A DNA stretch of 64,000 nt from Hydrolagus colliei (Eukaryota): contig CM068762.1 in assembly GCA_035084275.1 (NCBI GenBank), forward strand, positions 11,718,001 through 11,782,000. Reading direction: 5' to 3'. The first letter of the stretch is position 1. Each line of letters begins with the position of its first letter. Below are positions 1,752 to 63,538 of the stretch, in pieces. A program made the translations under genes and the position numbers. Below the pieces are notes generated by a model. The model saw only the letters and a program-made list of their open reading frames with translations, searched no databases and was not told the origin of the DNA.

Positions 1752-13026
<11,275 letters not shown>

Positions 13027-18294: not shown

Positions 18295-21200
18295 TTAGGT
18301 TCGGAACACGACTGTGGAATACTCCACGGATTCCGAAGCATCATTGAAGTTGGCGTAAGTTGCAGACCTGTCGGTGGGCGGGGTGGAGGATTGAATGTTC
18401 AGGGTGGCGTAGGTAATGGCTTCATCTGCTCCGTGAATCTAAAATCGGACAACTTGGTTAATTCGTATACGGAGGACAGAAAATGCGTATAAAATATATT
18501 GAAAATAAAAATGAATTTAAAATAATGAATTAAAAAAAGATAAATAATATATAGATGGATTAGATTATATAGATGTGTGTGTGTATATAGAAGCCTGTGG
18601 GATTGAATATATGAATATTATTTTACTCAAAGCGCTTCACAAAATATACTTTAAAGTGAATTGACTGTATATTGTGTGGGCGAAACGTACAGCAAACCAA
18701 AAACAATAAAATTACACTTGTGAATAGCGTTTTTCACATAAGGAAAATGTCGGGTCTGGACAATGTTTCAGACCCGAGCTAGGGTCAAGGAGGGGGAGGG
18801 TAGAGGGAAATGTGGGGATTTGGGGTGAACGATGGGACCGTTGAAGAGGAAGGTTTTGAGACGGAAGTTGAAAGCGGCTAGGGAGAGGGGTTCCAGATGT
18901 TGAGGGCAGAGTGGCTGAAGGCTGGCCTGCCAATGGTGGGCCGGATGGGTGGGGGGAGGTGGAGCAGGTCAGAGTCTGCTGAGTAGAGGGGGTAGGCAGA
19001 TTGGTAGGGGGTAGGAGGTCGTAGAGGTAGGGTGGGGCAAGGCCTTTATGAGGACAAGGAACTTGAATCCTCTGGGTGATGGGAAGCCAATCAAGTCGGG
19101 CAAGGATAGGGGAGATGGGGTCACGAAGCTCGGAGGGATAGAAACAATGAAGGTGAGTCATATGTTAAATAGATTTTACCATTGTGTGAGGTGGGGGATC
19201 CTCTGTATTAGCTGGCAGAGCGTGTTCTGTTTTTTTAACAAAAGAAATGAATGGATTACTCATTTAGTGATCAGAATCAAAAACCTTCGTGGGGCACCAG
19301 TCGGGTCTACAGAACTCCCTCCCATAAGGCACTACTGACGACAGACTAGTTACAATGCAGTTACAATTGGGTTTCAAACCTTTAGAATTGGTTAAACCTG
19401 GAGACGGGTTGGTTGCATATTAACTTTAACAAAATAAGTGGTAATTAAGAATATGGTGTGTTGTACATTAGATCTAACATCACAGGAATCAACACTGAAA
19501 ATACATAGCGTTAAGTGCTGTGTTATCAGAGCCCAGGTGTTTATAGCTTGAAGAAATACAGTCCTGCAAACCTCACATTGTTTGAAATCCTGTAAATGAA
19601 CAACCGCCCTCCAGTTACAAGTCAAGTGCTCGTCACAATCTCACGCCAATGTTTGCTATTAAGTTGAACGACAGTTAAATGTGGCTTACCGTTCCTTCCG
19701 ATTTTACTTCTGCTTTTCCATACGCATACCACAGTGAGCAGGGCCAGCAAGGAAAGCCCCAACACCACTGCGATGAACACGGACTTTAACAAGCTTGAAA
19801 GATCCCTGTAAGATTAAAGTGAGATGAGCTGACCTAGGCCTGGGCAAGAATTTGAGGGGATATCGGACGAAAAGGCCCGTTTGACCTGTTCAGACATTCC
19901 TACCGAACCCAAGCGTTTGACCATTGGCGCTAAAGGTAATTTGGTACCATTTTCTGAGTATTTCACTCATCTTTATAGCGGTTCCACACAAATCACCATG
20001 ATCTATGATGTGGAGTCCTGTAGCTCGGTGGTTAGAGCACTCGCCTTACAAGCGTGAGACCTGTGTCCAAATCCAGGAAGGGTGAATGTTTGGATTAAAT
20101 TCCTTATTCCACACGCCTAATAATAATTCCTCAAATAAAACCATAATAAAATTGGTCTTTTAAATCCATGACTGTTTGTGGGGGACAGTGCTGTGCGCAA
20201 TTGGTTGCCGCGTTTCACCCACAATTATACAGTCGATTCACTTTACAGTATATTCTGTGAAGCGCTTTGAGACGCTTAGAAGACTATATCAAATGCAAAG
20301 ATTATTATCGTTATGATTTCCACCTGGGTTCAGGTTTCACATTTCATTATCGAGCATGTCAGAATGCCCAGAATTTGGCCGAATCACGAACGCTGCCTGA
20401 ATTGTGAAACCCGTATTCCATAAGTTTTCTTTTCGAACTGAAACAACAACTTGAGAACAGATTCTTAATTCCAACCGTTTGCCACGCGCTTGCCCCCATA
20501 ACGTTACACAGTTAGAGTAAGTGCTGAACCAAGTTGGATTCCTCCACAATTGTGATCGGATCGCAGAACTCTGCGGTGGAATAGTCCCATTATTTTCTCA
20601 TTATAATATGAGTCATATAGATGGATTGTTGCAGTGATAACTAAATCTTACCTTGCTGTGGTACTGGTGATAGCCGCAGTGCTGGTGATAGCCGCAGTGC
20701 TGGTGGTAGCCGCAGTGCTGGTGGTAGCTGTGGTCAAAGTTGTGGTCAAAGTTGTGGCAATGAAAGGTGTGGCTGTTGACCCTGTTAGATATATCACAGC
20801 GAATTCATAATCACAACTCCCTCATCACTCTCAAGACTATGTGAAATAAATGGGGGGAGAATTAACTGCTTGAATTTTCGGTGGGACGACTATCAACAAC
20901 AACATTACATTTATCGAGCGCCTTTCACGTCGGGAGGACATCCCAAGGCGCTATCAGGCGGGTTCACTTGGTAGCAACAACTTGCGTTTATATTGGGCCC
21001 TTCACGCGGGGAAACAGTCACTTTCAACACATTTTTATTATCACCCCGTCTCAAATGTTCTTGACTCTTACCATGAGAGATCTGTAGGTGTATAACCTCT
21101 GTGATCTCTACTCGATTCTCTCTTGCTGCTCCACACCAGTATTCCCCATCATCTTCCTCCTTTGCCTTCACAGCGTAAGTAACCTGACTTTGCCATTGAT

Positions 21201-22883
21201 GAGTGATGGAAAATCTTCTTTTAAATGGTTGATTCACAACCCCTTTAGACGTGGCTATACGACTACACTCATTTTTGGAGGTTACTTTACAAAAGAACTT
21301 GTTATAATACCGTAGATTGCCGCTGTAGTTGCATGTTACACTGGTTCTCACTCCCAGTTCAGCAGGCAACATTCTTTTTATCGGTTTCTCAGAACCTGTT
21401 GGTGAATAAAATATGACGTTAAAGAGAGAGAGAACATCCTGCGTTTACTCTTGGTCCAATCCAATGCTACGTCTGTTGACAAGTATCTGACCATCTCGTG
21501 TCAGGTTCTACTGAAGCATAAATAGGTCTGCACTTGGACAGGCCTTTGTGTAAAGTGCGATGCAGACACTGATGTGTTTAAATTGCATTTTGTATGTTCA
21601 GAAAAGTACTGTTTGTATTTTCCAGCACAATTTGGTTTGCAATGAGTCAATATACTGTAAAGGCAATCTTACCTTTGATCACTTTCAGCAGCACAACCTC
21701 TGAAATTTCTATAACTCTATTACTAGCACTTCCACACCAGTATATCCCAGTGTCTTTCTCTTGAAGTTTCTTCACAGAAGCAGAAATTGACCCAACATTG
21801 CTTGCAATTATTGATACTCTCCCAGAATTTACTGAATATCCATCAGTACATGCAAAATAATTGCACTTATCATCTTTGGTTTGTTTACACAAGCAGTGAT
21901 TTGATTCCCGGAAACCGTATGTTTCCCGGTATTGACACTTTATAGTGATGTCTCCTCCCAGCCTAGCCATTAGCATTTTTGATTCAATTTGTTCTGATGA
22001 ACCTGTGGATTAAATGTAAAGTGGAAAAGTTCAGATGAACAGACAAATAAGCAAATCCTTGATCAGTCTGTCTGTGGAATATCTACAGCCAACTATCCTG
22101 AGACGCCGTCCGGCATGGAGGGCGCTATATAAATCAAAGTTGTTGTTGTTGTTGTATCCACTTGTCCCAGCCCCTGTGGGTGGGGGAGTTGAGTCCCTGT
22201 ATTGACATGAGAGGGTTGGCAGTCATTAACTGGCGGAAGGCAGAGTTCAGCCCAATTCTATCCCTAACCAATGTTCATCTGTGAGCATTTTCTAGAAGGA
22301 GCCTATGATCAATGATCAGCAGTCTCTCCAGTGAGATCAGTTCAGCTCAAAGATGCGCAAAGAAACCTGTGGCTTTAGGTCTCACAGCTAACGCAGGGCC
22401 TGACTTCCTGAGCCACCGAGCTGCCAACTTGATGTTCATTTTAAGGGACAGCAACTCACACAAGTATTGATAACAACGTGGAGCTATAACACATTTTGGG
22501 GTCGGATGCTTTTACCTGACGTGAAAGTGAGGAGCAGCAAAGCCGGTATCCACATAGTTTCCAGGGACAAGATCCACATTGAGTCTTGGAGAGAAGGACA
22601 GTTTGTATCTACTCTGTCGAAGGACTTCCTGATTGACGCTTCAGGAAATGCACAACATCAAGTGGTAAACTGTTGATTCACAAGCCAGTTTGCAAACCAA
22701 TAACTAAAGGGAAGTTCAACTGAGGAAGTCCATGTCCACAGCTGTTGCAAGAGCACAAAGGATGGGAGGATTGTGAGCGCAGTTTGTGTGACTGTAAAGG
22801 CCTGGCTAATAAAATCAAAGGGTCATTTTTAAGTGGGACAGACCCGATACTGAAGTTAGGACAAACAGAGCGATGAAATCCAT
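18295..22883 (-). CDS. Receptor A: CD300/pIgR-like inhibitory receptor with 2 IgV domains, mucin stalk, TM and ITIM tail
   Basis: Leader 22844-22883 (MDFIALFVLTSVSG); Ig1 21673-22002; Ig2 21072-21395; stalk 20652-20781 (phase 1-2); TM 19690-19805 (DLSSLLKSVFIAVVLGLSLLALLTVVCVWKSR, phase 2-1); possible 18-nt exon 19380-19397; exon 19180-19211 (phase 1-0); terminal exon 18295-18438 (ITYATL, ATYANF, VEYSTV, TAA). All phases join. Confidence 0.85.
18700..19110 (-). mobile_element. L2 3' fragment
   Basis: RDPISPILARLDWLPITQRI...GLAPPYL; boundaries approximate. Confidence 0.7.
20012..20315 (+). mobile_element. tRNA-derived SINE
   Basis: Same consensus; 3' boundary approximate. Confidence 0.85.
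20665..20756 (-). repeat. Coding tandem repeats in the receptor A stalk (18-nt unit x4, 12-nt unit x2)
   Basis: GCTAYCACCAGCACTGCG units (ATTSTA/AITSTA) and ACAACTTTGACC units. Confidence 0.85.
21072..21395 (-). CDS. Receptor A IgV domain 2 exon
   Basis: 324-nt phase 1-1 exon: VTCNY...KFFCK...EC...RRFSIT...EEDDGEYWCG; cag/gtaag boundaries. Confidence 0.85.
21673..22002 (-). CDS. Receptor A IgV domain 1 exon
   Basis: 330-nt phase 1-1 exon: ...ITIKCQY...HCLCK...KC...GRVSII...LQEKDTGIYWCG; cag/gtaag boundaries. Confidence 0.85.
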
Positions 22884-23565
22884 TTTCTGTGCCGTATTGG
22901 AACCAGGAAATCAGCATCAACTGTGGAGCCATTGAATTTGCCCCTTTTTCAATTTCACTTCATTTGCTTGGTTTCAGACTCTTCTGCTGAACAGGAAACC
23001 GAGCAGTTGGTCAACAAATCCGGTTGATGCAATGAGCTCTCCAGAGCCAAATATGGTGGGGATGTCTCACCCCACCTCCACCCCCGCCCCCCACCCTGCC
23101 CCAATAAAGATATTCAGGTTGTTTTATGCTTTGCTTGCTTTTTTTTGGAAAATAGATATTTGTACGTAAATATACTTGGTACAACAGAAATCTCAACATT
23201 AAATACATGTGTATTTCTTCATGTGGCCGAGCAAGTCCTGGTGAGCTTTTTGTATTGATATCTCTCCATCATTTAAGGAATCCGTCTGATAGCCTGTGAC
23301 CCACAGCTTGTCCTCCTGCTCTTTCCCCTCCGTTCCTCACACGTGGACCAGCTACACAGTCCTCGCGCCACCCCCAGGCAACCAAACTTTCAAACGCCGC
23401 CGCTGGCCACAACCACTGATACTCTCGCTGTAAATGCCTTCTTCCTCTCCCCCTCCCTCCCTCCCTTCCTCCATCTGCCCTCTCTCCCCGCCTTCTCCTC
23501 TATGCACTGTGACCTCTGGCACAGTCACCATTACTGGAAAATGTCTCCACTGATTGAGCAATCTC
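22884..23565 (-). promoter_or_regulatory. Putative promoter module of receptor A, shared with B and C
   Basis: Block homologous to 32884-33315 and 41964-42240. Contains ACAGGAAAC (22991-22999) and ATTGAGCAAT (C/EBP-like, 23553-23562). Confidence 0.5.
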
Positions 23566-25081: not shown

Positions 25082-28000
25082 TCAGACGACTGTAGAATAT
25101 ATGACAGACTCTGAGTTGTTTTGGAGTGTGCTGGCAGCTGGCTTTCTGGCTGATTGGCTGCCTCCTCCTGCGTTGACCCCCTGAACATTAGCATATATAT
25201 CGTTCACCTCAGCCGCCGGGGCAACCTGCACGAGGGAATAGATCACTTCTCCTCCAGGTGTGGAACCCTAAAAAAAGTGAAACTCTGTCAGTACAGCAGC
25301 AAAGGCAACATCAGAAGTTACCAATAGGAAACCTTCACAACTTCCTTCTTCCTGCGTAACGTACTCAACTACTAACTTGGCTTCCAGCCCACAGTTTTCT
25401 CTTAAGACATTCTATTGTTGAGCTACAGATCTAGCCATGATCTAATATAATAATAGAAATAATAATATTCCTTGCATTTGATATAGGGCGAGTTTCCTTA
25501 CTCCACGTGACTAATAAAAATCCCTCAAACAAAATAATAAATTGTTCATTTCAATCCTCGATTGTTTGTGTGGGGACGCTGCTGTGCGCAATCGGCTGCC
25601 ACGTTTCACCCACATACTGTGCATACTGTATATGACTTTACAGTATATTACGTAAAGCGCTTTATGTGAAAAGCGCTATATCAAATGCAAGGATTATTAT
25701 TATTATTAGTGGTGTCCTTGAGGTTTACATGATAAAAAAAACCCACAACAACAACAAGTTAAACTTATAAAGCGCCTTTCACGTCGGGAGGACGTCACAC
25801 ATAAGAGCACATTTGTTGGCGTCTCATGGTGCTTGCTTCTTACCGTTCTGTTCCCCGCTTGATTTTCTAAAGGAATCTTCTCTTTCCCATTTGTACCTTT
25901 TTTAAAAAAACACATATAAAAAAGCACATTTCAGAAGAGACACTTATTGAATTTGAACTTGTTTCCTTATCTAACTTTCGTCTCGTCTTTATACCACACT
26001 TTACGCGTGAAATAAGGGGAGGGGGGGATAGGGGGTTTCTGTTAGTTCATATCAACATTTAATAGTTTGTCAAATCTGATGGAATGTAACTGATAAATTA
26101 AGATGTTACAACACAGACTGAAGTACTCTTGCAACAGGAACAGAGCTGTGTGTTGCACTGTTATTTAAAGTGATTTTAATACAGTAATAATAATAATCCT
26201 GGATTTGAACACAGGTCTCGCACTTGTAAGGCGAGTGCTCTAACCACTGAGCTACAGGAGCTCCACATGAACTGTCTCTGGTTGGCTTACTTTGCGATTG
26301 GAGAGAGAGGAGGAACGCATTCACTGGAGGCAGCTTGATTTGAGTTGGGGTTTACAGTAGACGTTTGGCTTCTATTCTCCAGTTTCCAGCCATGAGTCCC
26401 TAACAGAGGTTCAATAAGTTTGCTGCACAATCAAGGAAATGTATAACGCATTTTGTCTCATGGCTGTGTCAGATCCCTTAGATAATAATAATAATGTGTG
26501 CCTTTGATATAGCACCCTATCACATCAATAAGAGTGCTTCTCATGAATATACTGTAAGCTGAATTGACTGTATAATTTTGTGGGGCGAAACACAGCATCA
26601 TAATAATAATATTTAGGCACACTATAAGATGTGGGCCTTTCCCTTTGGTTTTCTTGTGCCTGAAACTCACCAAACTTCTTGTGCAGCCCCGCCTTAATGC
26701 AAAGGACAACAGCAGCAACAAACAGAAGCAGGAAAACTCCTCCGAGCACGGGGAGCACAATATGCCAGATGAGATTCCTGGGAAAATACAAGTACAGCAT
26801 TTGACTGGATCTTTCTCAGGCGAAACGCGACAGCCGATCCAGCAGCGTCCCGCAGACAACCGTGGTTTGAGCGAACAAATAATTTATTTGATTACTATCA
26901 CAAATACTTCCTATTCAAGCCATGATTAAGGCTGGTAAGTTCATAAATTTTTTTTTAACATTTTTTGCTGTGTGCAATGCCGGACTGAATTTGTCTTAGA
27001 AATTGATTACAAAACTTTTCAAATTTTTGACATCAAACTGGGGTGGTGGGGAATGGTGGGGGCTGGGGTGGGGTTTTGGGAGGGGTGGGAAGAATAATGG
27101 TGAGGATTGTAAAAAAAATTACAGATAAATATAAGAAGAAAAATATAATAATCCTTGCATTTGATATTGGATATAAACAGGATTGTAGAATGGCTGGATG
27201 TGTGGTAGATGAAATTTAGCCTGAAGAAATAACCCTTTTGGTAGGAGAAGTAAATAAGAGAAGTAACTAACGGCATGCCCTGAAAGGAGCTAAGAAGACT
27301 AGAAGGGAAAACGGGAAGAAGGTTTCAGTCCAGGAAGCTCCAAAAGTAGTTGCGATAACAAAAGAAAGCAAATAAATAAGGATTTTTAAAAAATAAATAA
27401 AGAATAGAGTTAGTGCAGTACTTGGTTTATGGGCAGAGGAACCGAAAAATAAGGAATTATTTTATTGATGATGATAAATTTTTCTAAATCCTTAGTCTGA
27501 CCACATTTGGAGAACTGTGCTCAGTTCTGGTCAACATGCCTCCAGATAGGACATTATAGCAATGGAGGGAATGCAGCAGAGATACAGTAGGATATTACCA
27601 CAGTCTTACACGGGAGCCTCGGTATTGGAAACGGTAGAACTTGTAGCCGACCTGCGAGTTGTACTTGTCGGTATCTCGGTAGCTGTTGATGTCCTGGTAG
27701 TTGGACCCAATGTTGTTGATGTCCTGGTAGTTGGACCCAATGTTGTCTTTCCTGCTGGGCCTGGGGACCATTGAAGAAATGGACGGTATCAGCAGAGTCA
27801 ACAACAACAACAGCAACAAAATTACAATCATGGAGCGCCTTTCACGCAGGGAGGACGTCCCAAGTTGCTGAACAGTCAGGTCAGGAACTAACAAGGGAGA
27901 GGGGCAGGGTAGGGGGCAGGGGTGGGAGAGAGTTAGGAGGGGAGGGAGAGAGTTAGAAGGGCAGCAGAAGACACGGTCGAAGAGACTGGCCTTGAAGGAG

Positions 28001-31000
28001 GTGAGGGAGGGAGCGAGGCGAAGGGACTGTGGGATGGAGTTCCAGAGTGCGGGGGCAGAGAGACTGAATAAGAACATAAGAATAAGAAGCAGGAGTAGGC
28101 CATCCGGCCCTTTGAGCCTGCCCCACCATTCAATAAGATCATGGCTGATCTTCTAATCTAACTCCACCTGCCCCGCCTTCTCCCCATATCCCTTAATCCC
28201 TTTAGTAAGATTTTATACCAAAAATATCTGGTGTTTGTTACGGGGTAGAATTCCATACGGCTCCACATTTACAATAACAGTAACAGCCTTTCATCTCAGG
28301 AGGACGTCCCAAGGCGCTGGGGTTTGTGACTCCTGTAATGTAACATTTCAGAGAGTCCAGAGTTTGTCTTAGAGTCTTTCATTCTGTAAATTCTAGAGTA
28401 CTTATTGGGTAGAGTCTGTGATTGAATTAATTGTACCTTGTTCATCATACGAAATGCCTTGCTGTGCTTTACGTGAAGTGAACAGATCTGCGTTAGTTAT
28501 TGTAATTATGTCAATTAACCAGGGCTGTCGGAGAGGCACATAGTAAGTCATATCAAAATTAATTCATCAAGCTGTTTTTTAAAAAAATCTAGACATGAGA
28601 ATGGGAGAAAACGTCCTGTGTAATGTTCCTATTGTAAATGAATAACCCAAATGTGAGTTAAAGGCATTGGTCTCATTGCTTTACTAGTCAATTTCTCCCA
28701 GTATGTGTTCAATGTTACATTTCTTGGCTGAGCAAAGATGATAGGGTTAGGAATCATCTACAGAAATCTTGTACCAAGTTCGAAAGTCAGAGAATCTGAT
28801 TCTACAGCTACAGATTGCTCTTTAATAACCTGAGACAAACGGTGAAATTCCTTCAATGCTGAAAATGTGCAACAAAAACATAAGAACATCGATAGAGATA
28901 GACACTGCCTGACCTGCTGACTGTTCCCAGCCACTTGTCTTGTTTTTATATTTAATATCCTTTGTGTTGCAGTTGTCAACTGTCCCACACCTTGCCAACT
29001 GTTAGCAATAACCTGAGATCTACTCTCATTATCAAACTGCAATAAAAATGGCAATTACCACCGTACCTTCAGCAATCTGTAATTCGACTTCAAACTTTAA
29101 ATTGGAAAACGACTTCCTTATAACACACCAGTACACGCCTCCATCGTTCCTCGTTAGATGATCCATTGTTACTGAAAACATCCCTCGCAACTTATCATCA
29201 CTGATTGACAGTCTGTGTGTTGGAGGATCACCAGCAGTAATCAGAATAGAGCAACTGGAATAAACATCACCTTTACACCAGTATTTTACATTATTCCTGT
29301 AATCCTGAGTATAGCTACAGGTGACAGTGACTGAACTTCCCGATATTCCAGACACCTCGGACGGTCCTGTTAGCTGATATATACCTGTTGGGATATGAGG
29401 AGTGAGTGAGAATCAGTTTCTAAGTGTGAACAGGAACAGTGTCTGTATTTAATACCAAATTAATAATAATAACAACAACAACAACAACAACAATGTCGAT
29501 TGGCATATGTATAGTGCCCTTCACGTAATGGAGCGCTTAAATAATAATATTAGCCCCTTGTCATGTCTTCAATTGATCTGAAAGCGTGTCACAAAATTAA
29601 CTATAAAATCAATTGACTGTATATTTTGTGAGGGAAACGCAGCAGTGAATCGTGCACTGAACTGCACGGCTCCACTCTTCCTCTGTAAATGGGGCAGCGT
29701 CCTTCTTCCCAAAGTGCTGGACAGTCAGGGGCTTGCTACTCTCCTAACGTTACCTGTAGCTCCTCTCCAAATGTACCATTTCAGAGCGGACATAGTTTAT
29801 CAAACTCTGTAAATTCCCGATAGGTATTTGGGTAGAGTCTGTGATTGAGTAAATTCTACCATGTTCTTTAGAAGGAATGCCTTGCTGTGATTCATGTTGA
29901 GGGAACAAGTCTTGGTTAGTCAATGATCTCTGAATTAACCAGGGTTGATTGAGAAGCATGTACTGAACAAGATCAAAATCAATTCTTAACACTGCTTGGA
30001 AAACAAAAAAACCCCATGAAGACTGAAGAAATCTTGTGTAATGTTCCTATTGTAACATAATAAGATATACGTGAGTTAAAGGTGTTGGTCTCATGGATTT
30101 ACTGGTTAATTTCACTCAGTAATTGTTCAATGTTACATTTCTTGGATGAGCAAAGAGTTAAGGTTAGAAATCATTAAAAAATCATTAAAACTCCATGACT
30201 GTGTGTGGGACACTGCTGTGCACGATTGGTTGTTATGTTTCACCAAAAAATACACAGTCAATTGACTTTACATTATAATCTGTGACGCGCTTTGAGAAAT
30301 CTCAACTATGTGATAAAACATAGCAAAGCAAGGATTGTCATCATCTGCGGAAATCATGCAGTGAGTTTAAAAAAAACATACAATCAGATTCCATATCTAC
30401 AGATTGGCATGTTAATATCCCTAGCACTGTAGGTGTTAACTGTCTCGTATATGGCCAACTGTTGGAAATAACCTGAGATCTATTCTTATTATCAAACTGC
30501 AATAAAAATGGCAATTACCACCGTACCTTCAGCAATCTGTAATTTGACTTCAAACGTTAAATTGGATAGCAGAGTTGGTGTCTCTATAACACACCAGTAC
30601 ACGCCTCCATCGTTCCTCATCAGATGATCCATTGTTACTGAAAACATCCCTCGCTCCTTATCATCACTGATTGACAGTGTTTGTGTTGGAGAATCACCAG
30701 CAGTAATCAGAGTAGAGCAACTGTAATAATCATCAGCTTTACACCAGTATTTTACATAATCCCTGTAATACTGAGTATAGCTACAGGTGACAGTGACTGA
30801 ACTTCCCAAAGCTCCAGACACCTTGGACGGTCCTGTTAGCTCATGTGAACCTGCTGGGATATGAGGAGTGAGAGTCTGTTACCAAGTGTAGCCAGAAACA
30901 GTGTCTGTATTTCATACCAAACTAACAATAATAACAACAACATGAATTGGCATTTATTTAGTGCCCTTCATGTGGCGCAGAATGCTTCAATAGTAATCAT

Positions 31001-34542: not shown

Positions 34543-34584
<42 letters not shown>

Positions 34585-49300: not shown

Positions 49301-50923
49301 TGAGATGTATTCACTCTATGTTTCAGGAGCGGAGGGAGGGGGAGGCGAGTGGGGGTGTGTAAGGTTTCTGGTAGGTATTGGCTCAGGTAATAATAATAAT
49401 AATAAAAAGAAGAAGAAGCAGAATCCTTGTATTTTAATATTGTGCTTTTCACATTTTATCGACGTCTCAAAGCGCGTCACAGAATTTACTGTAAAGTGAA
49501 TTGACTGTGTATTTGTGGACGATACCCGAGCCAATTGCACACAGCGGCGTCCCCACAAACAGTCGTGGATTGAAATGACCAATTTTTATTATTGCGTGTT
49601 TTTGGGAGAGATTATTGTCAGGCGTGTGTGTGTGTGTGGAGTCAGGAAACTTGCTCAAGGTTCCGCCCTGATCTGCCTGGATTCGAACACAGGTCTCACG
49701 CTTGTAAGGCGAGCGCTCTAACCCACTGAGCTAGAGGAGCTCCACGATGCAGATTGGTTGGGGATCAGGAGGCCACGGGAAAGGCTGGAGACGTGGATCT
49801 TGGAAAACAGGATCAACCGACAACACTGCGGGATCTGGTTAAAGAGCTAAATCAACAGTGAGATAAACAGTTCAGAAAACACCAGATAGATAGCGAGATC
49901 AGGAAAACAGATTAGGAAAGTTTAGGGAGCAAAAGCACATGTAGTCATGTAAAATGCCTAAAATGTGTTCAAATTAAATGCAGTGAAATATTAGGGCATT
50001 TATTTGTCATTATTGTGAGGGTTTTTTGTTTTGATATACATCTTTTTTTTCCGCTCTGGCAGCACTGAAGCTGAAAGCAAATAAAACAGTGGTGTGATCT
50101 TTGTGTATGTTTGAATAGGCATATTTGACCTATCATTGGTGTTCACTTATTAACCCTTAGTTGAAAGCTAGCTTTCTCTGCGATGGTCTGTTAAAAATAG
50201 CACTGATTTATTGCAATGTCCTGTGGCACAGTGGTTAGAGCACTTGCCTCACAAGTGAGAGGACCCGAGGTTTTGATTAGGCAAGTTTCCTTACCCCACA
50301 CACCTCGGTTTACCTCGCGATAAGTAGGAACCCTGTTGTTAGTCGATTGGCGGATTGTTTGTCTGGGGGAAATAATCCCTTCAATAAAAAATTATAATTA
50401 TTTCGGTCACTTGAATCCACAATTGTTTGTGGGGGATGTTGCCGTACGCGATCGGCTGCCGCGTTTCGCCCACCAAAATATACAGTCAATCCACTTTGCA
50501 TTACATTCCGTGAAGCGCTTTGAGACGTCTAGAAGTGAAAAGCCGCGATATCAAATGCAAGGATTTTCATTATTATTATCTGAAACTCCTATCTCTTTCT
50601 CAGCAGCGTCATGAGATCCTTAAAGTCCGACTGGAACAGGGAGAAGGGAATCTCCTTGGTTTAGCGTCAGATCTGAAGGGTCGGAGAGCGAGAGAGAAAG
50701 AGCGAGAAAGAGCGAGAAAGAGCGAGAAAGAGCGAGAGGGAGCGAGAGGGAGAGATGGGATTAGATGCTGAGCTCTAGCCTCGTTCCTTCCCGTCCTGTC
50801 TTGTGAAATTCCATAAAACTGATAACTAGGAGTAGTGACATTGGAGCGAGCGGGTTCTGGCGACATTTCCTTACCTGGTAACGAGGCGACGACCAAGAGG
50901 AGAGCGAGTTGAGTGAATACCAT
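43364..50923 (-). CDS. Receptor D: CD300/pIgR-like with 2 IgV domains, short stalk and neutral TM; cytoplasmic exons tentative
   Basis: Leader 50875-50923 (MVFTQLALLLVVASLPG); Ig 48273-48587 and 47527-47856; stalk 46896-46938 (phase 1-2); TM 44876-44982 (NGMSTALLIPLIGGSILLVLVITIFFIRYEK); candidate exons 43973-44025 and 43364-43547 (LIYTKM). Tail phases are not fully reconciled. Confidence 0.75.
45630..46748. mobile_element. Non-autonomous hAT-type DNA transposon (MITE-like)
   Basis: Perfect 16-bp TIR TAGGGAACGGCGATAT (45630-45645 and 46733-46748); perfect 8-bp TSD ATACATAT (45622-45629 and 46749-46756); subterminal CGATAT/ATATCG arrays; no transposase ORF. Confidence 0.92.
45875..46445 (+). 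repeat. G-rich minisatellite, unit about GAGAGAGACGGCTG(G)n, inside the hAT element
   Basis: Roughly 20 degenerate tandem units; this is the source of the spurious poly-Pro and poly-Gly ORFs. Confidence 0.9.
47527..47856 (-). CDS. Receptor D IgV domain 2 exon
   Basis: GKSVTVDCEY...GKYWCR...SC...GVFSVTMNELLMEDAGRYWCG; phase 1-1. Confidence 0.9.
48273..48587 (-). CDS. Receptor D IgV domain 1 exon
   Basis: GGSVTLKCQY...GKYWCR...LC...FTVTMDALKVEDTGTYWCG; phase 1-1. Confidence 0.9.
48698..49080 (+). mobile_element. tRNA-derived SINE, long subfamily
   Basis: Head with CTCACAA loop, central segment and (ATT)n tail. Confidence 0.8.
49388..49743 (-). mobile_element. tRNA-derived SINE
   Basis: Full consensus on the minus strand. 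Confidence 0.85.
50217..50579 (+). mobile_element. tRNA-derived SINE, long subfamily
   Basis: Head, central segment and tail. Confidence 0.8.
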
Positions 50924-54234: not shown

Positions 54235-55191
54235 TTACTGTTTGATGATGATCGTGGAGTACTCTGTTGTTTCGGAAGCCGCTGGGCGCTGGCCGGTGGC
54301 TTGATGGCTTCCTGGCTCTGGGAAGTCTTGACTTTATCGTGCGTGGTGGACGCGTCCTGCGATGCCGGATCGCCAGGGCTGAATTGTCACCGTGCTATAG
54401 GTAACACCTTCCTCCACTTCTGTTGAACAGCTGAGTGGGGAAAGAGCATATTAATAATAATTTATTATTATAATCATCGTCAACGTTGCATTTTATTATC
54501 GTGTGTGTTTTTTCTTTGATGGATTATTATTAGGCGTGTGTGTTTATGTATGTATGTGTGTGTGTGTGTGGTGCGTGTGTGTGTGTGTGGAGTAAGGAAA
54601 CTTGCGCAAGGTTTCGCCTGACCTGCCTGGGATTCGAACACAGCGTCTCACGCCTGTAAGGCGAGTCTCGGCTCTAACCATTGAGCTACAGCAGCTCCAC
54701 AGGATGCCGTGTGACGCGGATTGACTGTGTGTTTTGCGGGCGAAACGCGGCAGCCAGTGTGCGCCCGGCAGCGGCGTCCCACGAACAGCCGTGGAGTGAA
54801 CGACCAATTTGTATTTGACGGATTGACGGCCAGGACACAGGGAGAGGGAAAGGAAGAGAGAGAGATAATAGCTCATTCTCATTTCGAATAGTGCCTTGGG
54901 ATCTAAAATGTTCACCTGAGCAGGTAGGTAAAGCCTTAGTTTAATGTCTGCAAAGAATAAGTGAAGAGTAATAACTTCCGACAATGCAACGCCCTCCCCA
55001 ACCTCTCCCCTCCCCAACCTCCCCCACTCCCCAACCTCCCACCTCGCCAATCCCCCTCCCTCCCCAGCGATGCATTGGAAATCATATGACTTCCAGGCAC
55101 AAGGGTTTAGTAAACCTTGAAGACTCTTGCATTCTTACCACCGAGTTTGAAGTTGGGATGGAGTTCTCCACTTGTGGTGTTATGTCTTTAC
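54235..55191 (-). pseudogene. Orphaned or decaying cytoplasmic exons of receptor E
   Basis: 53-nt exon 55139-55191 (same length and phase as B's 25844-25896 exon). Terminal-type exon 54235-54430 has VTYSTV and TEYSTI in one frame, interrupted by TAA at 54334-54336. Confidence 0.55.
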
Positions 55192-56349
55192 CTTTTGGGA
55201 GGGAGGGAGGGGGAGGGAGGGAGGAGAGAGGGAGGAGGGGGAGGAATAAAATAAGGTCAGATGACATTTTCAATTGACACAGCCTCTCCTCACTCCAACC
55301 CTCTTCAATCACAGGCAAGGTCCTCTGGATCCTCTGTTCCGGGCCAGAGATAAGAACTTATCTAGTTCATTTAGAATCACTTTAAAGAGCCAGGATAATG
55401 ATAATAATAATAATAACAGTGATAATCCTTGCATTTGATATGTGTCTCAAAGCGCTTCTCACAGAATACGCCTGTAAAGTGAATTAACTGTGTATTGGTG
55501 GGCGAGACGCGGCAGCCAATTGCGCACAGCAGCGTTTTCCCCCCACCCACCCACCCCAAACAGTCGTGGGTTGAGATGACCCATTTCTTTTCTGAGGCGT
55601 GCGGAGTAAGGAAACTTGTCCTAGGTTTCCCTCCCGGTGACCTTGCCCGGAATCGAACCGGGTCTCTCGCTCGCTAAGACGCTTCAATGGAGGGATAATC
55701 ATAGTCACCTTGTGTGCTGACCGAGGCCGTGGCCTTGCAGCCCCGGACGCAGATTACAGAAGACTGCGTCGACCGAGAACAATGTCCCTTTCTTATGGTT
55801 CCACGTAACACATTGCCACATTGTGAACAGGGCGAGCTTGCCATTCCAGTGGGGAGGCTGGCACCATTAGCCAGTGTAACACAGCTACTGTTTCAATCAA
55901 CCCACCCTCATCCATCCCACCACAAACACACACACACACACACACACACATACACAGACCCTGACACACACGCGCGCACACCAAGAAATAAAGAGAGCTC
56001 TTTTACACCACATAGAGGACGGTACAACTTTACTGCGACAGAGGAAAATGAAAATAAATCCCAAAGCGCTGTACGCTTCACACAAACGCCTTCCGCGAGC
56101 AGGGAAAATGTCTCAAAGAGCTTTGGGGTGTGATCGACTACATTTCGGTCCTGGTCTGTTTGTGGAGATCTCGGGAGGTCTTTCAATCCAGTGCCCTGCC
56201 CTGTCATCCACACCCTTTCAATGCCTCTGCTACCCAACTGTCCGTCCACCTCTCGGACGCAGTGGATTGCCCCGCCTCAGTGCAGATGCTCTCGAGCCGC
56301 GAGTAATACACACACACAGAGAGACTTACTGTTGCGCTGTGATGACGTC

Positions 56350-59300
56350 TTATCTTTTGACGATCAGGACCACTAGGCCGATCAACAGCAGCAACACCAC
56401 TCCAAAAATGATGCCCAGAGCGATGTGCAGGCTTGATAAATCATCGACGAGAGCGAGAGAAGAGAGAGAGACGAGAGCTACATCAGCACAGAAACAGCCC
56501 ACATTCAGGTAGAATATGTGGGTGCGGAAGCAACTCTAGACTGACCTATCTTATCCTCTCTCCACCCTTTGATGTTATTTGACCATTCAATTTAAAAAAA
56601 AATAAACAGGCTTGATGGGCTGAATAGCCTCCTGTCTCCTATCCTCCCCTGGTTTCCTATGTTACCTTAAGATTCTAATTAAGATTGCTTGAGTGAGTTG
56701 GACATGAATTGCTGAATACAATGTGTGGCTGACGAAAATCAGAGCTGATGGGCGACAGAAAAGACACAGGGAGAATGGGTTGGGTTGGGGTTTGGACTGG
56801 GAGGAAGAGAGCTGGGAGGGGAGCGGAGGTGTAGGGGAAGGGAGGGCAAGTGGGGAGGTGGGGGGGGGTTGTGGTGGTTGGGGGAAGGTTGGCTAGTAGA
56901 TCTCTCCGGGGTTCCCGGACATTTCAGATTGGATCCCTCAGTTTAAGCTTCGNNNNNNNNNNNNNNNNNNNNNNNNNNNNNNNNNNNNNNNNNNNNNNNN
57001 NNNNNNNNNNNNNNNNNNNNNNNNNNNNNNNNNNNNNNNNNNNNNNNNNNNNNNNNNNNNNNNNNNNNNNNNNNNNNNNNNNNNNNNNNNNNNNNNNNNN
57101 NNNNNNNNNNNNNNNNNNNNNNNNNNNNNNNNNTTGGAGACACACCGCTGTAATAGGCCACATCTGGCACCAAGTCTACGATCTGATCATGTGAAAAGAA
57201 GCCAACAATTGTATGTGTGTGTTGCTGATCGCTGATCGCTGCAGCTATATAATACACAGCAAAATATCAGTGATGGGTGTGACAGGGAACCAGATTATAA
57301 AGGGTTATTATGCAAAGTGCCTCCATTGTAATCTTGGTCTAANNNNNNNNNNNNNNNNNNNNNNNNNNNNNNNNNNNNNNNNNNNNNNNNNNNNNNNNNN
57401 NNNNNNNNNNNNNNNNNNNNNNNNNNNNNNNNNNNNNNNNNNNNNNNNNNNNNNNNNNNNNNNNNNNNNNNNNNNNNNNNNNNNNNNNNNNNNNNNNNNN
57501 NNNNNNNNNNNNNNNNNNNNNNNNNNNNNNNNNNNNNNNNNNTAGTGGGGGGGAGGCGGTGGGAGGGATTGTGGAAGAGTGTTCCAGAGTTTCGGGGTTG
57601 CAGTGACATACTCGGACTCTGACTACTAACGGACGAGTGGTTGAAGAATGATAGCATTAGCTTGTCAGTTGCATCTTACCTTCGTAAACTCTGAGGAATA
57701 CCGGGTGCTGTATATCCAGGAGGTGAGGTCTTTCTATACCGCACCAATACCAGCCAGCGTCTCTCAGTGTTATCTTCCGCAGAGTCACTGAGAACTCGCC
57801 CCTCTTGTTATCGGCTTTCACTGTTAGTCTGCCGTGGTGAGATGTCCTTTCATGCTCGGAGGTGATCCCCAGCACACTGCAGTACCTCCTGTAGTAGCCC
57901 TGGCACCAGTACTTCTTATAGGCTCGGTAAGAGTTGTCAAATTTACACATTATAGTGGTTTGAGATTCCACCGTTGCATTCTTTTCGCTCGGCCCCCTGA
58001 GCGAAGCATAGGTCACTGTGGAATAAATGGGCAACGTTACAGAACTATACAAGTTATACAGTTTGGGGGCATCTTCCAGTGTTGGGAGGGTAACAACAAC
58101 TACAGCAACAATATGACGTTTTTTTGTAGCGCCTTTCATGTCAGAAGGATGTCGCAAGGCGCTGGACAGTCAAGGGAGGTGGAGGGAAGAGATGCCCGAA
58201 GGTCAAAGAGCCAAGTCTAGAGATAGGTTTTGAAGATTGGGTGGAGGCTGGTTGGTTGGTTGGTTTGGTTTGGTTTGGTTTGGTGAGGAGGGGAGATGGT
58301 TGGGGGTTGTCAGGGAGAGAGAGAGCGAGAGAGAGAGAGAGTTCATTTGAACATGGAGTAAAGACATCAGATGGACAATCCTGTTTGTGTGAGATTGTCC
58401 TCTGCCCCAGTAATGGCTGTCGGTGGTGCCTGGTGCAATAGGGGAGGTCACGTGTCCAGCCAGATGTGATCCTGAGCTGACGTGTAAGTCATTTAATGAT
58501 GATCCACAGATTCTTTTTTGTCCGCTCTGAGCTATTTGAGCCACTGCCGGGCTCACACATCCTGTGTCTTTACAGAGTGTGACTCCTGCAAGCGACAAAA
58601 TCAGGAAGTGAAGCTGCTGATCGCTACTCGTGATCTCCGAGTACCAGAGTCAGGGCCTTCCCCTCCCTTTTCCCCATCCACCCTCGCCCCTCGGCCCTCT
58701 CCGTCCACACCCCCACCCTCTCCCTCCCTCGCCCTACCCCCAGTTCGGTTTTCTTCCTACAAGTTACACTCGGTGGATTGAATGGTCTACAAGAGCTGCA
58801 AGACTCTACCTGGCGTGAAGGGCTTTACATTGATAATAATACAATACACAATTACATTTGTACAGCGCCCTTCACGTCTGGAGGACATCACAAGGCCCTT
58901 GGGTCACAAGGGCCTTGGGACACTTGTTTTCGAGGGACGCTTCGTTTCTGTGGATCCTGTTTATCCCTGGAGAACGAACCTTCAGCCACTCTGCCCCCAA
59001 ACTCTGGAACTCTACCCCGCAGTCCCTTCACCTCTCCCCTTCCCTGGCCTCCTGAAGTCCCACTGCAAGACCCTTCTCTTCAATAATCCCATTGGTCACC
59101 CCTTTTCCCTCCACCCTCCCCAACCCTGTCCCCAGCTTGGGTCTGAAATAATGGCTGTCCAGCGCCTTGGGATGTCCTCCTGATGTGAATGGCGCTTTAC
59201 AAGTGTAATTTTGTTGTTGTTGCTGTTGTCAACATGTGGAGGCCCAGTAACCTATAAGGGGAGGACAGGAGGGAAGGGTGGGGTGGGGGAGAGATTTGGG

Positions 59301-59980: not shown

Positions 59981-60039
<59 letters not shown>

Positions 60040-61899
60040 GTTTGTGTGTGGGGGAAATTCCCAACTATTTTTTGCTTCACCTCAAGATTCTTCTCTTCGA
60101 TGGACCCATCGCCAACTCCTAATCCCCACCTTCCCTCCCCTCAACAACAACAACAACAATAACTTTGATTTCTGTCCTCAGCTCAGGTCCTGAAGCAGTG
60201 ATTGTCCAGGGACGTCCTCCTGATGTGAAAGGTGCTATGCCATTGTAATTTTGTTGTTGTTGTTGTTTGCTTTGCCTGATTGATACCTGACGAACAATAC
60301 AGTTTTTTTTGGCTTTGGTGCAACCAGTATGAGTGCATCGGTTTTGTCCAGAAAATACACGTCCAGTCCACTTTGCAGTGTATCTTGTTAAGTGCTTTAA
60401 GAAGAATCAAAGATTCGCTATCGAATGCAAGCTTTATTATTATTATTATTATTAATAATCTCTCACTTGCAAGGCGAGTGCTCTAACCACTGAGCTACAG
60501 GACTCCAATTTATAAATTACAATCACTGATTCTGCGCTAGCAAAAGGAATAACTGGACCTCAATTGAATTAATTTTTTACAGTTATATCAAGTAACAGGC
60601 AGACTCAGGGGCTGAATTGGAAATAAGTGGAACGCATCAATCACCACATTGTAAAACTGCAGTAAATGGTTACTTAAAACATATAATATTTTCCTCTTAC
60701 ATTAACAGGATTGTGTGAAAGCACACCCAATTCAGTTGACTACATTAGAAAAATCTTATTCCTCGTTCGATGAAAAGCTACTGCTTCCCACCACCGCATT
60801 TCACTCCTGTACATGTACCCTACCAGCACCAGCAACGTAGGGACAGGAGGAGGCCATTCAGCCCCTCGAGCCTGTTCCAGCATTCGACTAATCCATGGCT
60901 CATCCATACCTCGACCGCATAAAAAATCACCCCAAAAATGCAGGTTTAGTCTAACATGCTAGCTTGCTAGCTTTAACGCTAACATTCTAGCTTCAACGGC
61001 ACAGACACTTTGAGTCGCCTCGACGACGTGACAAGTCACTGTAACGAATGCGAGGATTACTCTTATTATAATTATTATTATTAGGTTCACGGGTGTTCTC
61101 ATCCGCTCATCCCCCAAGGCAAAAGAAAGGCTGCAAGGACGTTCTGAAGTTTCCGAAGTCCAGTTTGCCTGTTGCTAACGCTTTGTGTTGACATGGGTTT
61201 CATTTCCCTTTGTTACCAAATGTACAATTGCCATCTTATTTTCTCTCCACGTTAAATAATTGGATTTCACAACAGTATACAGTACCCTGCACTTGTGACA
61301 TTTGCACCCCTCAACTCACCACAGTAAACTCCCGATAACTCGTCACTGCGAGAGGGAAATTTCAATCCACGACTGTCTGTGGGGGAACGCTGCTGTGCGC
61401 AAATTGTCTGCCGCGTTTCACCCACAAATATACAGTCAATTCACTTTACAGTATATTCTGTGAAGCGCTTTGAGACACCGTCTAGAAGATGTGAAAAGCG
61501 CTATAGCAAATGCAAGGATTATTATCATTATTATTATTAAACGCATTGATGATATTGACAGCCTGATGACTTAAGGTCATAACAAATTAAACCAGGGTCG
61601 AGGTATCAGAAGTTTACTGTACTTTTATCGTCGCCTGTCTTGCGAAAGACAGAAATACATGGGGTGGGGGAGTGAGGAAGGGAAGGGAGGTTAAACTCCT
61701 AACTTCATTGCAACACTGAGATAGTTACGGTCACGCTCTACTGAGTAAAGCAAACAGTAAAGAGATTTGCTGATCCGCTAGCTGCTGTAAAGAGCCTGTA
61801 TTGTTAAAAGGATTTGGTCTCTCCTTCACATCTGAGTAAAAATGACCCCGATTCCTTACCTGATAAGTAAGCCACCCACAGGAGCACTGTGTAGCCCAT
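56350..61899 (-). CDS. Receptor E: single-IgV CD300-like receptor; TM followed immediately by a stop
   Basis: Leader exon 61860-61921 (ATG at 61899, [14 protein letters not shown]|gtaag) with an upstream acceptor; probable non-coding exon ending at 62257 (gtaag); Ig exon 57680-58015; stalk exon not securely found (gaps nearby); TM exon 56330-56431 ([29 protein letters not shown] at 56350-56352). Confidence 0.7.
56953..57133. other. Assembly gap (N)
   Basis: 181 N. Confidence 1.
57343..57542. other. Assembly gap (N)
   Basis: 200 N. Confidence 1.
57680..58015 (-). CDS. Receptor E IgV exon
   Basis: 336 nt, phase 1-1: TTIMCKF...KKYWCQG...YC...GRLTV...[21 protein letters not shown]. Confidence 0.9.
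58850..59230 (+). mobile_element. L2 3' fragment
   Basis: [18 protein letters not shown] plus L2 3' end with (TTG)n; boundaries approximate. Confidence 0.65.
59983..60037 (+). repeat. (TG)n microsatellite
   Basis: Long perfect TG run. Confidence 0.95.
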
Positions 61900-63538
61900 G
61901 TTCTTAACGATCTATATGTTCCTTTTAAAGAAAAGAAGGAAAACAAAACGAAGCAAAATAAAAGCAGACGCACAAAACGGAGGGTCTGTCAGGTCTGGTC
62001 TACTCTCGTTTTGATTCTCTGGTCCTGACTTGAGAGGTTTCGCTCTTGTAATGAGCGAGTGAGGGTTTCATTTCCTTCTATAAACAGCTGTGGCGGTTTT
62101 GTGCTGACTAAACCGACTCAACGCAAGAGCAAAGAGCGAGAGGAAGAAAGGCAGGCCGGCAACGCAAATGCCTTCTCAGACCTTACAGCATGTCTAGTGT
62201 GGAATAAATAAGTACCAGAGCATTCATGGTACAACAGCTCCTGCCTCCTGTCTTACATAAGCACCCGATTGTTCTCCCTCTCTCTCGCTCAAAGAATCGC
62301 ATCGACTGTCCAACGTTGTTGGTGACTGAAACTGACCTCAGCAGCAAGGATAAAAACTCCCACACTCTACACAGTTGTCCATTCAATCGTGCGCGTTGCT
62401 GCCCCGGTGCTCTGCCATAAGACCCGCTTTGTGATTTGAATGAATTTGCTCTTCACTCTCTTGCTGCGCACCGTTCCACAAGATCGTCTTGTGTGTGTGT
62501 GTGCGTGTGTGTGTTTTGCTAATCTGTGTTTTAGCTGCCCCCGTTTAACACGTGTAGGAACTTAACTCCGATTGTGAAAGAAGAGTTACAAGTAGAGTTG
62601 GGGGGAGGGAGGGGGGGACGGAACGACGACGACATTTTCTTTTTGTGTTAAAATAGAAGAAAGTTAACCCCTTTTTCTTTGGAGTTCTTGCCTTCCCTAT
62701 CTTTAACCTTCTCCGCGGTCTAACTCCATTCTCTGTTTGGGTTCTGTACTCAAGAAAGAGGACCTGTGATTGTGGTGACATCCGCGACAAAGGCTCAAAG
62801 TGTGTCAGCCTGGGATGTGGGTTTGAGCTGGGAGTTTTTTGAGATTGTGTTGACAGTCGAATGCAATACTGGGGAGTGGGGGGGGGGGGATACGATGCAT
62901 TGTTAGAGGAGGTCTCCTCTGGGATGGGGTGGAGGGTGTGGAGGGAGGGGACGGGAGGGAGAGGAGAGGAATAGGAGGGGGGAAGAAGAGGAGGTTTTGT
63001 TTTGTCAAACAGTGAGTCTGTGAGTCTTTGGTCGATAGCTTAAGCGCTCTGAGACGCCGTCCGGCGTGGAGGGCGCTACATAAATCGAAGTTGTGGTTGT
63101 TGTTGTTATAGCTGTGTGTGTTTTTTTTGTCATTTCTTGTTTGCTTTGTTTCCCGACAGCGCGATCAATCAAGCGAAGGAAGTACGTTCAGAACAATTGT
63201 TAATAATGAGCAATCCTCGAGTTTTGATTCATTTCCGTATCAGATCACCCACGGCTCCCGAGGGAAAGGCTTTCACAGCGCAAAGCGGGCAGAGCTGGTT
63301 GGTATAGGCTTGATTCCAAACCAGGAAGGGACAGTCCCAAACGGGTGAGAGTGAACCACAGGAGCTCGCAACAACAACAGCAATAACAACTTTGATTTAT
63401 CCAGCGCTCTGCACGCCGGACGGTTCACGACAACGGATCCCGGGACCCGAGGCATGCGGTGGGGTGGGGGGGGGGGGGGCGCGAGAGGGGGAAAAAGGTG
63501 ACCAAAGGTGCGGACGAACAGAAAGGTCTTCAGCCAAG

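Follow-up and report, generated by a model that had tools for sequence, protein, structure and literature searches.

We found that a 64,000-nucleotide stretch of the Hydrolagus colliei genome (assembly GCA_035084275.1, contig CM068762.1, positions 11,718,001 to 11,782,000 of the forward strand; hereafter, the window) probably carries, clustered in tandem, five genes (g1 to g5) for type I membrane receptors of the four-cysteine (four-Cys) V-domain superfamily to which pIgR, CD300, and TREM belong. All five are encoded on the minus strand, and an AHCYL1-like gene is their neighbor. The window (44% G+C; observed/expected CpG of 0.62) contains exactly ten V-type immunoglobulin (Ig) exons, all on the minus strand and in stop-free segments between 20.9 and 58.2 kb (Table 1). 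Their borders are AG on the acceptor side and GT on the donor side, in phase 1-1 throughout; nine match the Pfam V-set family at 38–54 bits, and g1-D2 scores 19 bits, under the cut-off. Spliced onto five leader exons, each with an ATG, a hydrophobic core, and a phase-1 donor, the ten Ig exons read in frame and give g1 to g5 two, three, two, two, and one Ig domains, with one leader and one transmembrane (TM) exon per gene. C23, C39, C47, and C90 as well as the D-x-G-x-Y-W-C motif are invariant in 10/10 domains. A profile built from the ten domains themselves, which shows only the absence of further copies, detected no further or relic Ig exon among 1346 stop-free six-frame segments (next best E = 0.075).

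An earlier note on this DNA had described ten phase 1-1 four-Cys IgV exons on the minus strand, organized with five leaders and five TM exons in domain numbers 2, 3, 2, 2, and 1. We reach the same exon set, on which V-set matches, splice borders, and invariant cysteines all agree, and the same gene structures, in which the joined exons stay in frame. In the KY/FWC signature that the note ascribed to the domains, Leu takes the place of the KYWC Trp in g1-D1, and Phe takes it in g1-D2. All five proposed genes are present, but only four look intact because g5 carries two in-frame stops.

Comparison of a ten-domain profile with the Protein Data Bank (PDB) gave the highest scores per single domain to mouse CD300LF (100 bits), human CD300LF (90 bits), and CD300A/CD300C (84 bits), followed by NKp44 (72 bits), pIgR D1 (67 bits), FcµR (44 bits), and TLT-1 (44 bits). 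Whole pIgR chains reached ∼250 bits over five domains (D1 61, D2 24, D3 49, D4 61, and D5 52). Invariant cysteines, V-set matches, and Foldseek searches with AlphaFold2 (AF2) models of g1-D1 (predicted local distance difference test, pLDDT, 83) and g2-D1 (pLDDT 92) all place the domains in the superfamily, the structural support being for the fold and the disulfide pairing being read from the sequence. The superfamily assignment made earlier is, therefore, borne out by the PDB profile and Foldseek matches. Database homologues came from sharks, rays, sturgeon, gar, teleosts, amphibians, and reptiles, with true avian PIGR alongside, and they bear the automatic names “CMRF35-like molecule N” or “polymeric immunoglobulin receptor-like.”

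Cannon et al. in 2006 reportedly described skate MDIRs (modular domain immune-type receptors) with a variable ectodomain number, charged-TM forms, and forms with immunoreceptor tyrosine-based inhibitory motifs (ITIMs). The window resembles that family, by description and not by sequence, as a chondrichthyan multigene family with variable ectodomains and with activating and inhibitory forms. Related genes elsewhere have five domains (Narcine) or three (Mustelus), and elasmobranch orthologues of the g1, g2/3, g4, and g5 types exist, skates and rays included. One paper that cites Cannon et al. (PMC3031540) relates the skate MDIR family to the CD300/TREM/pIgR group.

Table 1. Features of the window with their positions, strands, and supporting evidence (position 1 is the first nucleotide of the window)
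Feature	Position	Strand	Evidence
AHCYL1-like gene, 3′ part, 13 exons, tail to tail with g1	1824..12639	+	
g1 last coding exon, 3′ part: ITYATL, ATYANF, VEYSTV, stop	18295..18426	-	Aligns with shark inhibitory tails; motif scan
g1 TM exon, VFIAVVLGLSLLALLTVVC	19690..19805	-	
g1 Thr-rich stalk exon (predicted)	20652..20781	-	AAG/GTAAGA donor; model in frame
g1 Ig exon D2, Trp to Phe	21072..21395	-	V-set 19 bits (sub-cut-off); phase 1-1
g1 Ig exon D1, four Cys, Trp to Leu	21673..22002	-	V-set 38 bits; phase 1-1; pairs with Heptranchias and Mustelus g1-type D1
g1 leader exon, MWIPALLLLTFTS/G	22516..22555	-	ATG, hydrophobic core, phase-1 GTAAAA donor
Decayed g2/g3-type leader exon and upstream region	22790..22960	-	∼85% nucleotide identity to g2/g3 leaders
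g2 last coding exon, 3′ part (approximate): VIYSLV, DIYANV, VIYSTV, stop	25082..25267	-	Motif scan
g2 TM exon, WHIVLPVLGGVFLLLFVAAVVLC	26671..26777	-	Matches TM of shark ITIM-bearing P0050, P0011, P0007
g2 mucin-like stalk exon, phase 1 to 2	27610..27760	-	Shark-stalk-like; splice sites; in frame
g2 Ig exon D3	29067..29384	-	
g2 Ig exon D2, the exon missing from g3	30527..30850	-	
g2 Ig exon D1	31812..32135	-	V-set 51 bits; phase 1-1; AF2/Foldseek best CD300LF, 44% identity
g2 leader exon	32832..32883	-	
g3 terminal exon: TM with Arg (WDILRWITFGVLALCTVSVVI), 30-residue tail, stop	35460..35634	-	Shark P0060 TM
g3 stalk exon (predicted)	36478..36586	-	CAG/GTCGGC donor at 36478 keeps frame
g3 Ig exon D2, counterpart of g2 D3	37881..38198	-	
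Reverse-transcriptase open reading frame (ORF), 321 aa, in g3 intron	38309..39274	+	RVT_1 51 bits
g3 Ig exon D1	40218..40541	-	93% amino acid identity to g2 D1
g3 leader exon	41912..41963	-	
g4 last exon	43364..43555	-	68% identity to Callorhinchus milii (C. milii)
g4 cytoplasmic exon (GKRKAEEEEFDPVFKAF)	43973..44023	-	76% identity to C. milii
g4 TM exon	44876..44982	-	67–71% identity to C. milii
g4 stalk exon (predicted; NTPDKPRNPLGGK)	46896..46938	-	Phase 1 to 2; good splice sites; loosely C. milii-stalk-like
g4 Ig exon D2	47527..47856	-	V-set 49 bits; 82% identity to C. milii D2
g4 Ig exon D1	48273..48587	-	V-set 54 bits; 56% identity to C. milii D1
g4 leader exon	50875..50923	-	Matches C. 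milii P0001 leader
g5 last exon: VTYSTV, in-frame TAA 54336-54334, TEYSTI, stop	54235..54430	-	
g5 cytoplasmic exon core (VENSIPTSNSVV)	55136..55171	-	75% identity to shark IENSIPKSNSVL
g5 stalk and TM exon, in-frame TAA 56352-56350	56330..56477	-	50% identity to shark TM
g5 Ig exon, TMIGD3-type	57680..58015	-	V-set 43 bits; clade with C. milii, sharks, tetrapod TMIGD3-like
g5 leader exon	61860..61899	-	Resembles shark leader MGFTLLLSIAFLS

The g2/g3 pair and the single-domain gene g5

Genes g3 and g2 align at 94–95% nucleotide identity over two blocks (40867-39368 with 32448-30970 and 38290-36285 with 29480-27459). Identity extends over both exons and introns, is 78% over the leader region, and ends before the TM exons, beyond which the 3′ ends are unrelated. 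The 3′ end of g2 encodes an uncharged TM, like that of the shark ITIM-tail forms (WHVILPAIMVLIILLLVAAIILYVKLK), and a tail with two canonical ITIMs, VIYSLV and VIYSTV. The g3 model (325 aa, in frame) ends in a TM that is 55% identical to that of shark P0060, is also like that of P0011, and has the same Arg-Trp as the shark short-tailed forms (IWPIFRWLLVGALVICTVSV). Judged by these motifs and the near-identical ectodomains, g2 and g3 carry the classic signature of paired inhibitory/activating receptors. Short-tailed forms with an Arg-Trp TM were also seen for g5-type and g1-type genes (the unnamed transcript P0120 and Mustelus P0218 and P0176). Each cluster gene type seems to occur in inhibitory and activating versions among chondrichthyans.

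The g2 segment 30970-29480, which holds the middle Ig exon, has no counterpart in g3. The collinearity of the two genes breaks there, and at the corresponding g3 site lies the reverse-transcriptase ORF (a region of ∼1 kb). In the domain trees, the five g2/g3 domains are monophyletic (support 100/99) and sister to elasmobranch genes with “MELIALLIL...” leaders (97–100/93–96). Because g2-D2 branches outside the pair formed by g2-D3 and g3-D2, the three-domain form is probably the older, and g3 would have lost an exon. Single phase 1-1 exons have recently been duplicated or lost in the cluster, and domain number has changed with them.

By sequence, the g2/g3 domains appear most like CD300LF; the mouse protein is 44% identical to g2-D1 and is also its best structural match. 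CD300 shares with the window the extra C-C′ disulfide cysteines in the V domain and the presence of ITIM tails and charged-TM forms in one cluster. Unlike CD300, which has one V domain, g1 to g4 have two, three, two, and two, and only g5 has one; the AHCYL1-like neighbor of the window is likewise unlike the 17q25 block of CD300. In the activating CD300 forms, the charged TM residue is Lys or Glu, whereas that of g3 is Arg. The tetrapod CD300 clade (98–99/95–97), represented by vole, Rhynchocyon, lizard, and caecilian CD300-type domains, holds no window domain.

Gene g5 is 57% identical to C. milii A0A4W3J7E6 and groups with it and an unnamed transcript (100/98), next with shark/skate “CMRF35-like 1/2/5” proteins (98–99/86–91), and beyond these with a possum TMIGD3-like protein, two caecilian proteins, coelacanth, and lungfish. 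This clade was supported in three trees (98/88 with LG+G4, 94/70, and 95/78 with C20) from a data set that left out human TMIGD3 itself. One of the caecilian proteins is an ADORA3 read-through model, and the best outside match of the caecilian protein is the possum TMIGD3-like protein. Because of this clade, we classify g5, by sequence, as a TMIGD3-type single-domain gene; its shark and C. milii orthologues also have one Ig domain. Like human TMIGD3 (1p13.2, overlapping ADORA3), g5 combines one V domain with a TM, it has the motifs KYWC-x-GYYR-xx-C and GWYWCGI(E/Q)R of the possum and caecilian TMIGD3-like proteins, and as at the TMIGD3 locus, an AHCYL1-like gene is nearby. Unlike TMIGD3, g5 orthologues have two ITIM or immunoreceptor tyrosine-based switch motif (ITSM) sequences, g5 itself being stopped twice. 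No ADORA3 match was found in the window, which ends 2 kb past the g5 leader, or within 10 kb of a shark orthologue.

The first g5 stop falls just past the TM, at a position where sharks have Ile and read ...LVILVIKKIRKHK..., and a good donor follows it. The second falls between two tyrosine motifs, after which the frame resumes to TEYSTIIIKQ and a normal stop (sharks have ...VTYATV...TEYSTVVFKK). The first two of the three N runs in the window (56953-57133, 57343-57542, and 63539-63744) lie between the g5 Ig exon, which ends at 57680, and the stalk/TM exon, which starts at 56477; the ORFs that cross these two runs are artefacts, and no exon abuts either. Their lengths are estimates, and a hidden exon is possible there. 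None is required, however, because the phase-1 donor of the Ig exon joins the acceptor at 56477 in frame (...RVYE/ALVSLSS...), a junction at which shark orthologues also have E/A. A separate g5 stalk exon near the gaps was sought, and no convincing one was found. As assembled, g5 is probably a recent pseudogene or a tail-less form.

A further relic lies just upstream of the g1 leader, where a decayed g2/g3-type leader (first ATG changed to ACG and donor GTAAGG to GTCTGT) is likely the remnant of another g2/3-type gene. This relic, the two stops in g5, the loss of the g2-type stalk donor in g3 (its GT is CA there), and the retroelement at the site where g2 has an exon would all fit a reading in which much of the cluster is decaying, with g5 and possibly g3 as pseudogenes and the receptor pair as a functionless duplication remnant. 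The Ig exons of g2 and g3 differ at 8 and 12 sites, mostly nonsynonymous, and their dN/dS of ∼1.9 and 2.4, from sites too few for a test, point the same way, although values above 1 are also compatible with diversifying selection, which is common in such receptors. We consider this reading possible and do not favor it: no Ig exon of the ten has lost its open frame, its splice sites, or any of the four cysteines, and g3 has an alternative in-frame donor, an intact shark-type TM exon, and a proper stop.

Relation of g1 and g4 to pIgR and FcµR

The tail of g1 has two canonical ITIMs by motif scan, ITYATL and VEYSTV. In the domain trees, g1-D1 pairs with an exon of the Heptranchias gene next in line (98–99/87–88) and with D1 and D2 of Mustelus XP_078054025, the D3 of which pairs with g1-D2; g1-D2 is also 35% identical to the exon for D3 of Mustelus P0176, with which the tree pairs it. 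The Mustelus relative came up among the matches of the g5 homology search. In four maximum likelihood (ML) analyses, one branch splits the g1-type domains and tetrapod pIgR D1-D4, with human FcµR D1, from all other domains. Support for this split was 91/88 with 109 rows (LG+G4), 99/88 with 77 rows (C20), 97/97 with FcµR added, and 96/92 with three Mustelus g1-type domains added; the split thus persists after the addition of domains that break long branches. In Foldseek searches, moreover, the three best matches of the g1-D1 model were mouse pIgR D1 and the human FcµR and pIgR D1 domains, whereas the top ten for the control, g2-D1, were CD300LF.

These results raise the prospect that g1-type genes are cartilaginous-fish relatives of the PIGR/FCAMR/FCMR domain lineage, with polymeric IgM or IgW as possible ligands. 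In that case, genes of the pIgR/FcµR, CD300LF-like, and TMIGD3 types would still stand together as in a single ancestral cluster, the members of which would have moved apart in mammals, to 1q32, 17q25, and 1p13. We hold this to be unlikely. Approximately unbiased (AU) tests reject no alternative placement of the g1-type domains (p 0.16–0.32), whether joined to the g2/3-type (0.27), the g4-type (0.24 and 0.32), the TMIGD3-type (0.16), or CD300 (0.18), nor do they reject a pIgR+FcµR clade without g1 (0.32). The pIgR D1-D4 and g1 domains all sit on long branches. HHalign and BLAST find the g1-type domains most similar to TMIGD3-, g4-, and CD300-type domains and not to pIgR, and the Foldseek margin is small (E 1.8e-9 vs. 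6.4e-9 for CD300A). The g1 tail is of the ITIM type and not the transcytosis type, the complementarity-determining region 1 (CDR1)-like loop of pIgR D1 (TSVNRHTRKYWC) is not in g1, and no PIGR-block neighbor lies in the window.

The C′-C″ motif of the Heptranchias g1-type D1, GFVHREYSGR, resembles GYVSSKYAGR of pIgR D1 and NFIKAEYKGR of FcµR and would favor the same relationship. The Y-x-G-R within it is common to pIgR D1-D4, FcµR, and the Heptranchias domain, but it is absent from g1 of the window and from the Mustelus g1-type domains. With Heptranchias its only bearer among g1-type domains, we rejected Y-x-G-R as a shared derived character of the g1 type and pIgR. That g1 and its named shark counterparts (the exon at Heptranchias locus L001 and Mustelus XP_078054025) are the cartilaginous-fish PIGR/FCAMR/FCMR lineage is doubtful. 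The grouping repeats from tree to tree, with nonsignificant AU tests and contrary raw similarity, and we regard the pIgR/FcµR affinity of g1 as weak; by sequence, no better candidate than g1 is available for a relative of pIgR/FcµR domains.

Gene g4 is 70% identical overall to the C. milii “pIgR-like” protein XP_007897677, its orthologue, by which the g4 exons from the TM onward were set. Its D1 and D2 pair with D1 and D2 of that protein; the second of these domains pairs, in addition, with D2 in genes from Heptranchias and Stegostoma. For g4 and g5 alike, the best database matches were C. milii proteins, which points to a holocephalan source other than C. milii. Elasmobranch orthologues of g4 and g5 are 35–49% identical to the window genes, and those of g4 in sharks carry an NPVY motif. 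A motif scan found no ITIM in the g4 tail, and by eye, the tail has no likeness to bird pIgR tails.

Like the window, pIgR and FcµR combine superfamily membership with tandem V domains. Unlike pIgR, the window has no D5-type domain, D1 loop motif, or transcytosis-type tail; g1 and g2 have ITIMs in their tails instead, that of g3 has 30 residues, and that of g4 lacks an ITIM. Tetrapod pIgR D5 groups with gar PIGR D2 and eel D3, and no window domain ever joins it. That the locus encodes a true receptor for polymeric-Ig transcytosis, with g4 or g2 as the functional cartilaginous-fish pIgR, is very improbable: tandem four-Cys V domains, “polymeric immunoglobulin receptor-like” orthologue names from the National Center for Biotechnology Information (NCBI), and the conserved ITIM-free g4 tail with NPVY in shark orthologues would suit it, but no domain groups with pIgR D5 or bony-fish pIgR D1/D2, the g4 domains fall outside the pIgR groups, g2 has ITIMs and looks with g3 like a paired inhibitory/activating set, the names are automatic, and no sorting or cleavage signals were recognized.

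The earlier note had proposed a chondrichthyan MDIR/pIgR-like locus. Variable domain number, ITIM and charged-TM forms, and C. milii matches speak for the first part of this proposal. The pIgR part was not supported: none of the domains joins pIgR D5 or the pIgR of bony fish, a tail of the pIgR type and the D1 loop are both missing, and the cluster has no PIGR neighbor in the window. In the phylogeny of all ten domains, only g1 moves toward pIgR D1-D4/FcµR, at nonsignificant AU values, and clearer affinities place g5 (TMIGD3-type), g2/g3 (CD300LF-like), and g4 (a type conserved among chondrichthyans) elsewhere. Synteny with the PIGR block (FCAMR/FCMR/IL10) or the CD300 block, also envisaged, was not borne out on the side of the cluster that the window covers, where the only neighbor is the AHCYL1-like gene.

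Conserved gene order and the flanks of the cluster

On contig CM068663.1 of Heptranchias perlo, one strand carries a g5-type gene (P0247), then P0007, and then a gene with a g1-type first Ig exon (loci L001 and L002). P0007 is one gene model that fuses a g4-type and a g2/3-type gene, and the window order of g5, g4, g3/g2, and g1 is, thus, the Heptranchias order. In Mustelus, g5-type and g1-type genes lie ∼150 kb apart on the same chromosome. Because the gene order is the same in a shark, the cluster is, on this comparison of sequences, older than the elasmobranch/holocephalan split.

Human AHCYL1 (1p13.3) and TMIGD3/ADORA3 (1p13.2) lie ∼1.5 Mb apart, and the pairing of an AHCYL1-like gene with a TMIGD3-type gene fits 1p13-type synteny; it was found at the window only. 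Around seven shark loci (Heptranchias, Scyliorhinus, Hemiscyllium, Carcharodon, and Mustelus), the flanking 10 kb, which the intergenic distances exceed, gave no AHCYL or ADORA3 match, nor did the rest of the window give an ADORA3 or second AHCYL match. The C terminus encoded by the AHCYL1-like gene is four residues longer than the human PDB constructs. Human C1orf162 adjoins TMIGD3. Precomputed Pfam matches to C1orf162 (PF27946) on shark and sturgeon relatives (L001, L002, P0247, P0248, and P0033) are weak, and on the receptor tails, they were not confirmed; only a subthreshold match to SIT, an ITIM adaptor, appeared.

A G-rich minisatellite in a g4 intron (45901-46440; ∼18 copies of ∼29–32-bp units with 70–73% matches) gives rise, on either strand, to long ORFs rich in Pro/Ser and Gly/Arg that are spurious. 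Dispersed repeats (e.g., 27595-28077, 36424-36714, 40694-41527, and 15439-15912) encode recurring pseudopeptides, including LTVQQLGTSSLRERRS; they account for numerous hydrophobic ORFs that are spurious, and at least one C. milii gene model (P0002) was led astray by them. The third N run begins 1.6 kb past the g5 leader, and no coding sequence was recognized between 61.9 and 64 kb.

Proposed functions and implications

Several points weigh against a cluster of five working receptor genes as we have drawn it. The stalk exons of g1, g3, and g4 are splice-logic predictions (for g1, the interval from D2 to the TM exon offers no other good exon of phase 1 to 2), and so are the middle cytoplasmic exons of g1 and g2, between the TM and last exons, for which splice logic is ambiguous. 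Without a g2-type stalk donor, g3 may be mis-spliced or decaying, and the g5 stops, with assembly gaps nearby, could be sequencing errors. “CD300LF-like” denotes similarity and not orthology because the g2/g3-type domains lie outside the tetrapod CD300 clade. The choice of AHCYL1 over AHCYL2 (IRBIT family) for the neighbor is a marginal lean by sequence (∼95% identity and 905 bits for human AHCYL1 vs. ∼94% and 889 bits for AHCYL2). The ITIM and charged-TM functions are those predicted from the motifs, and given a 2014 survey that found no FcRγ chain in cartilaginous fish (PMC4016189), any adaptor for g3 would be a candidate only.

For the receptor cluster as we favor it, ITIM biology elsewhere suggests that g1 and g2, once their ITIMs were phosphorylated on tyrosine, would recruit SH2 phosphatases and damp signaling. 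The TM Arg of g3 would pair with an adaptor bearing an immunoreceptor tyrosine-based activation motif (ITAM), so that g3 would activate on the same ligand as g2 or on a similar one. By analogy with CD300LF, the ligands of g2 and g3 could be lipids or other surface patterns, and expression on leukocytes would be expected from other receptor families.

The cluster genes add new members to a known superfamily, and automatic annotation already covers their orthologues under CMRF35-like or pIgR-like names; none of the papers in the library searched dealt with the cluster, with how TMIGD3 evolved, or with a pIgR relative in chondrichthyans. Reviews up to 2026 describe pIgR and other Fc receptors as absent from cartilaginous fish and ask by which route Ig enters secretions (PMC4016189; PMC13337447). 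The locus supplies no pIgR. It shows the four-Cys V-domain receptor family of chondrichthyans as an old, ordered cluster, one gene type of which has its orthologue in TMIGD3, a gene that has received little study. The g1-type and g4-type genes provide concrete proteins for IgM/IgW binding tests, g2 and g3 would be a natural inhibitory/activating pair for a ligand search, and the recent exon gain or loss between these two genes offers a direct view of how domain number varies in the family.

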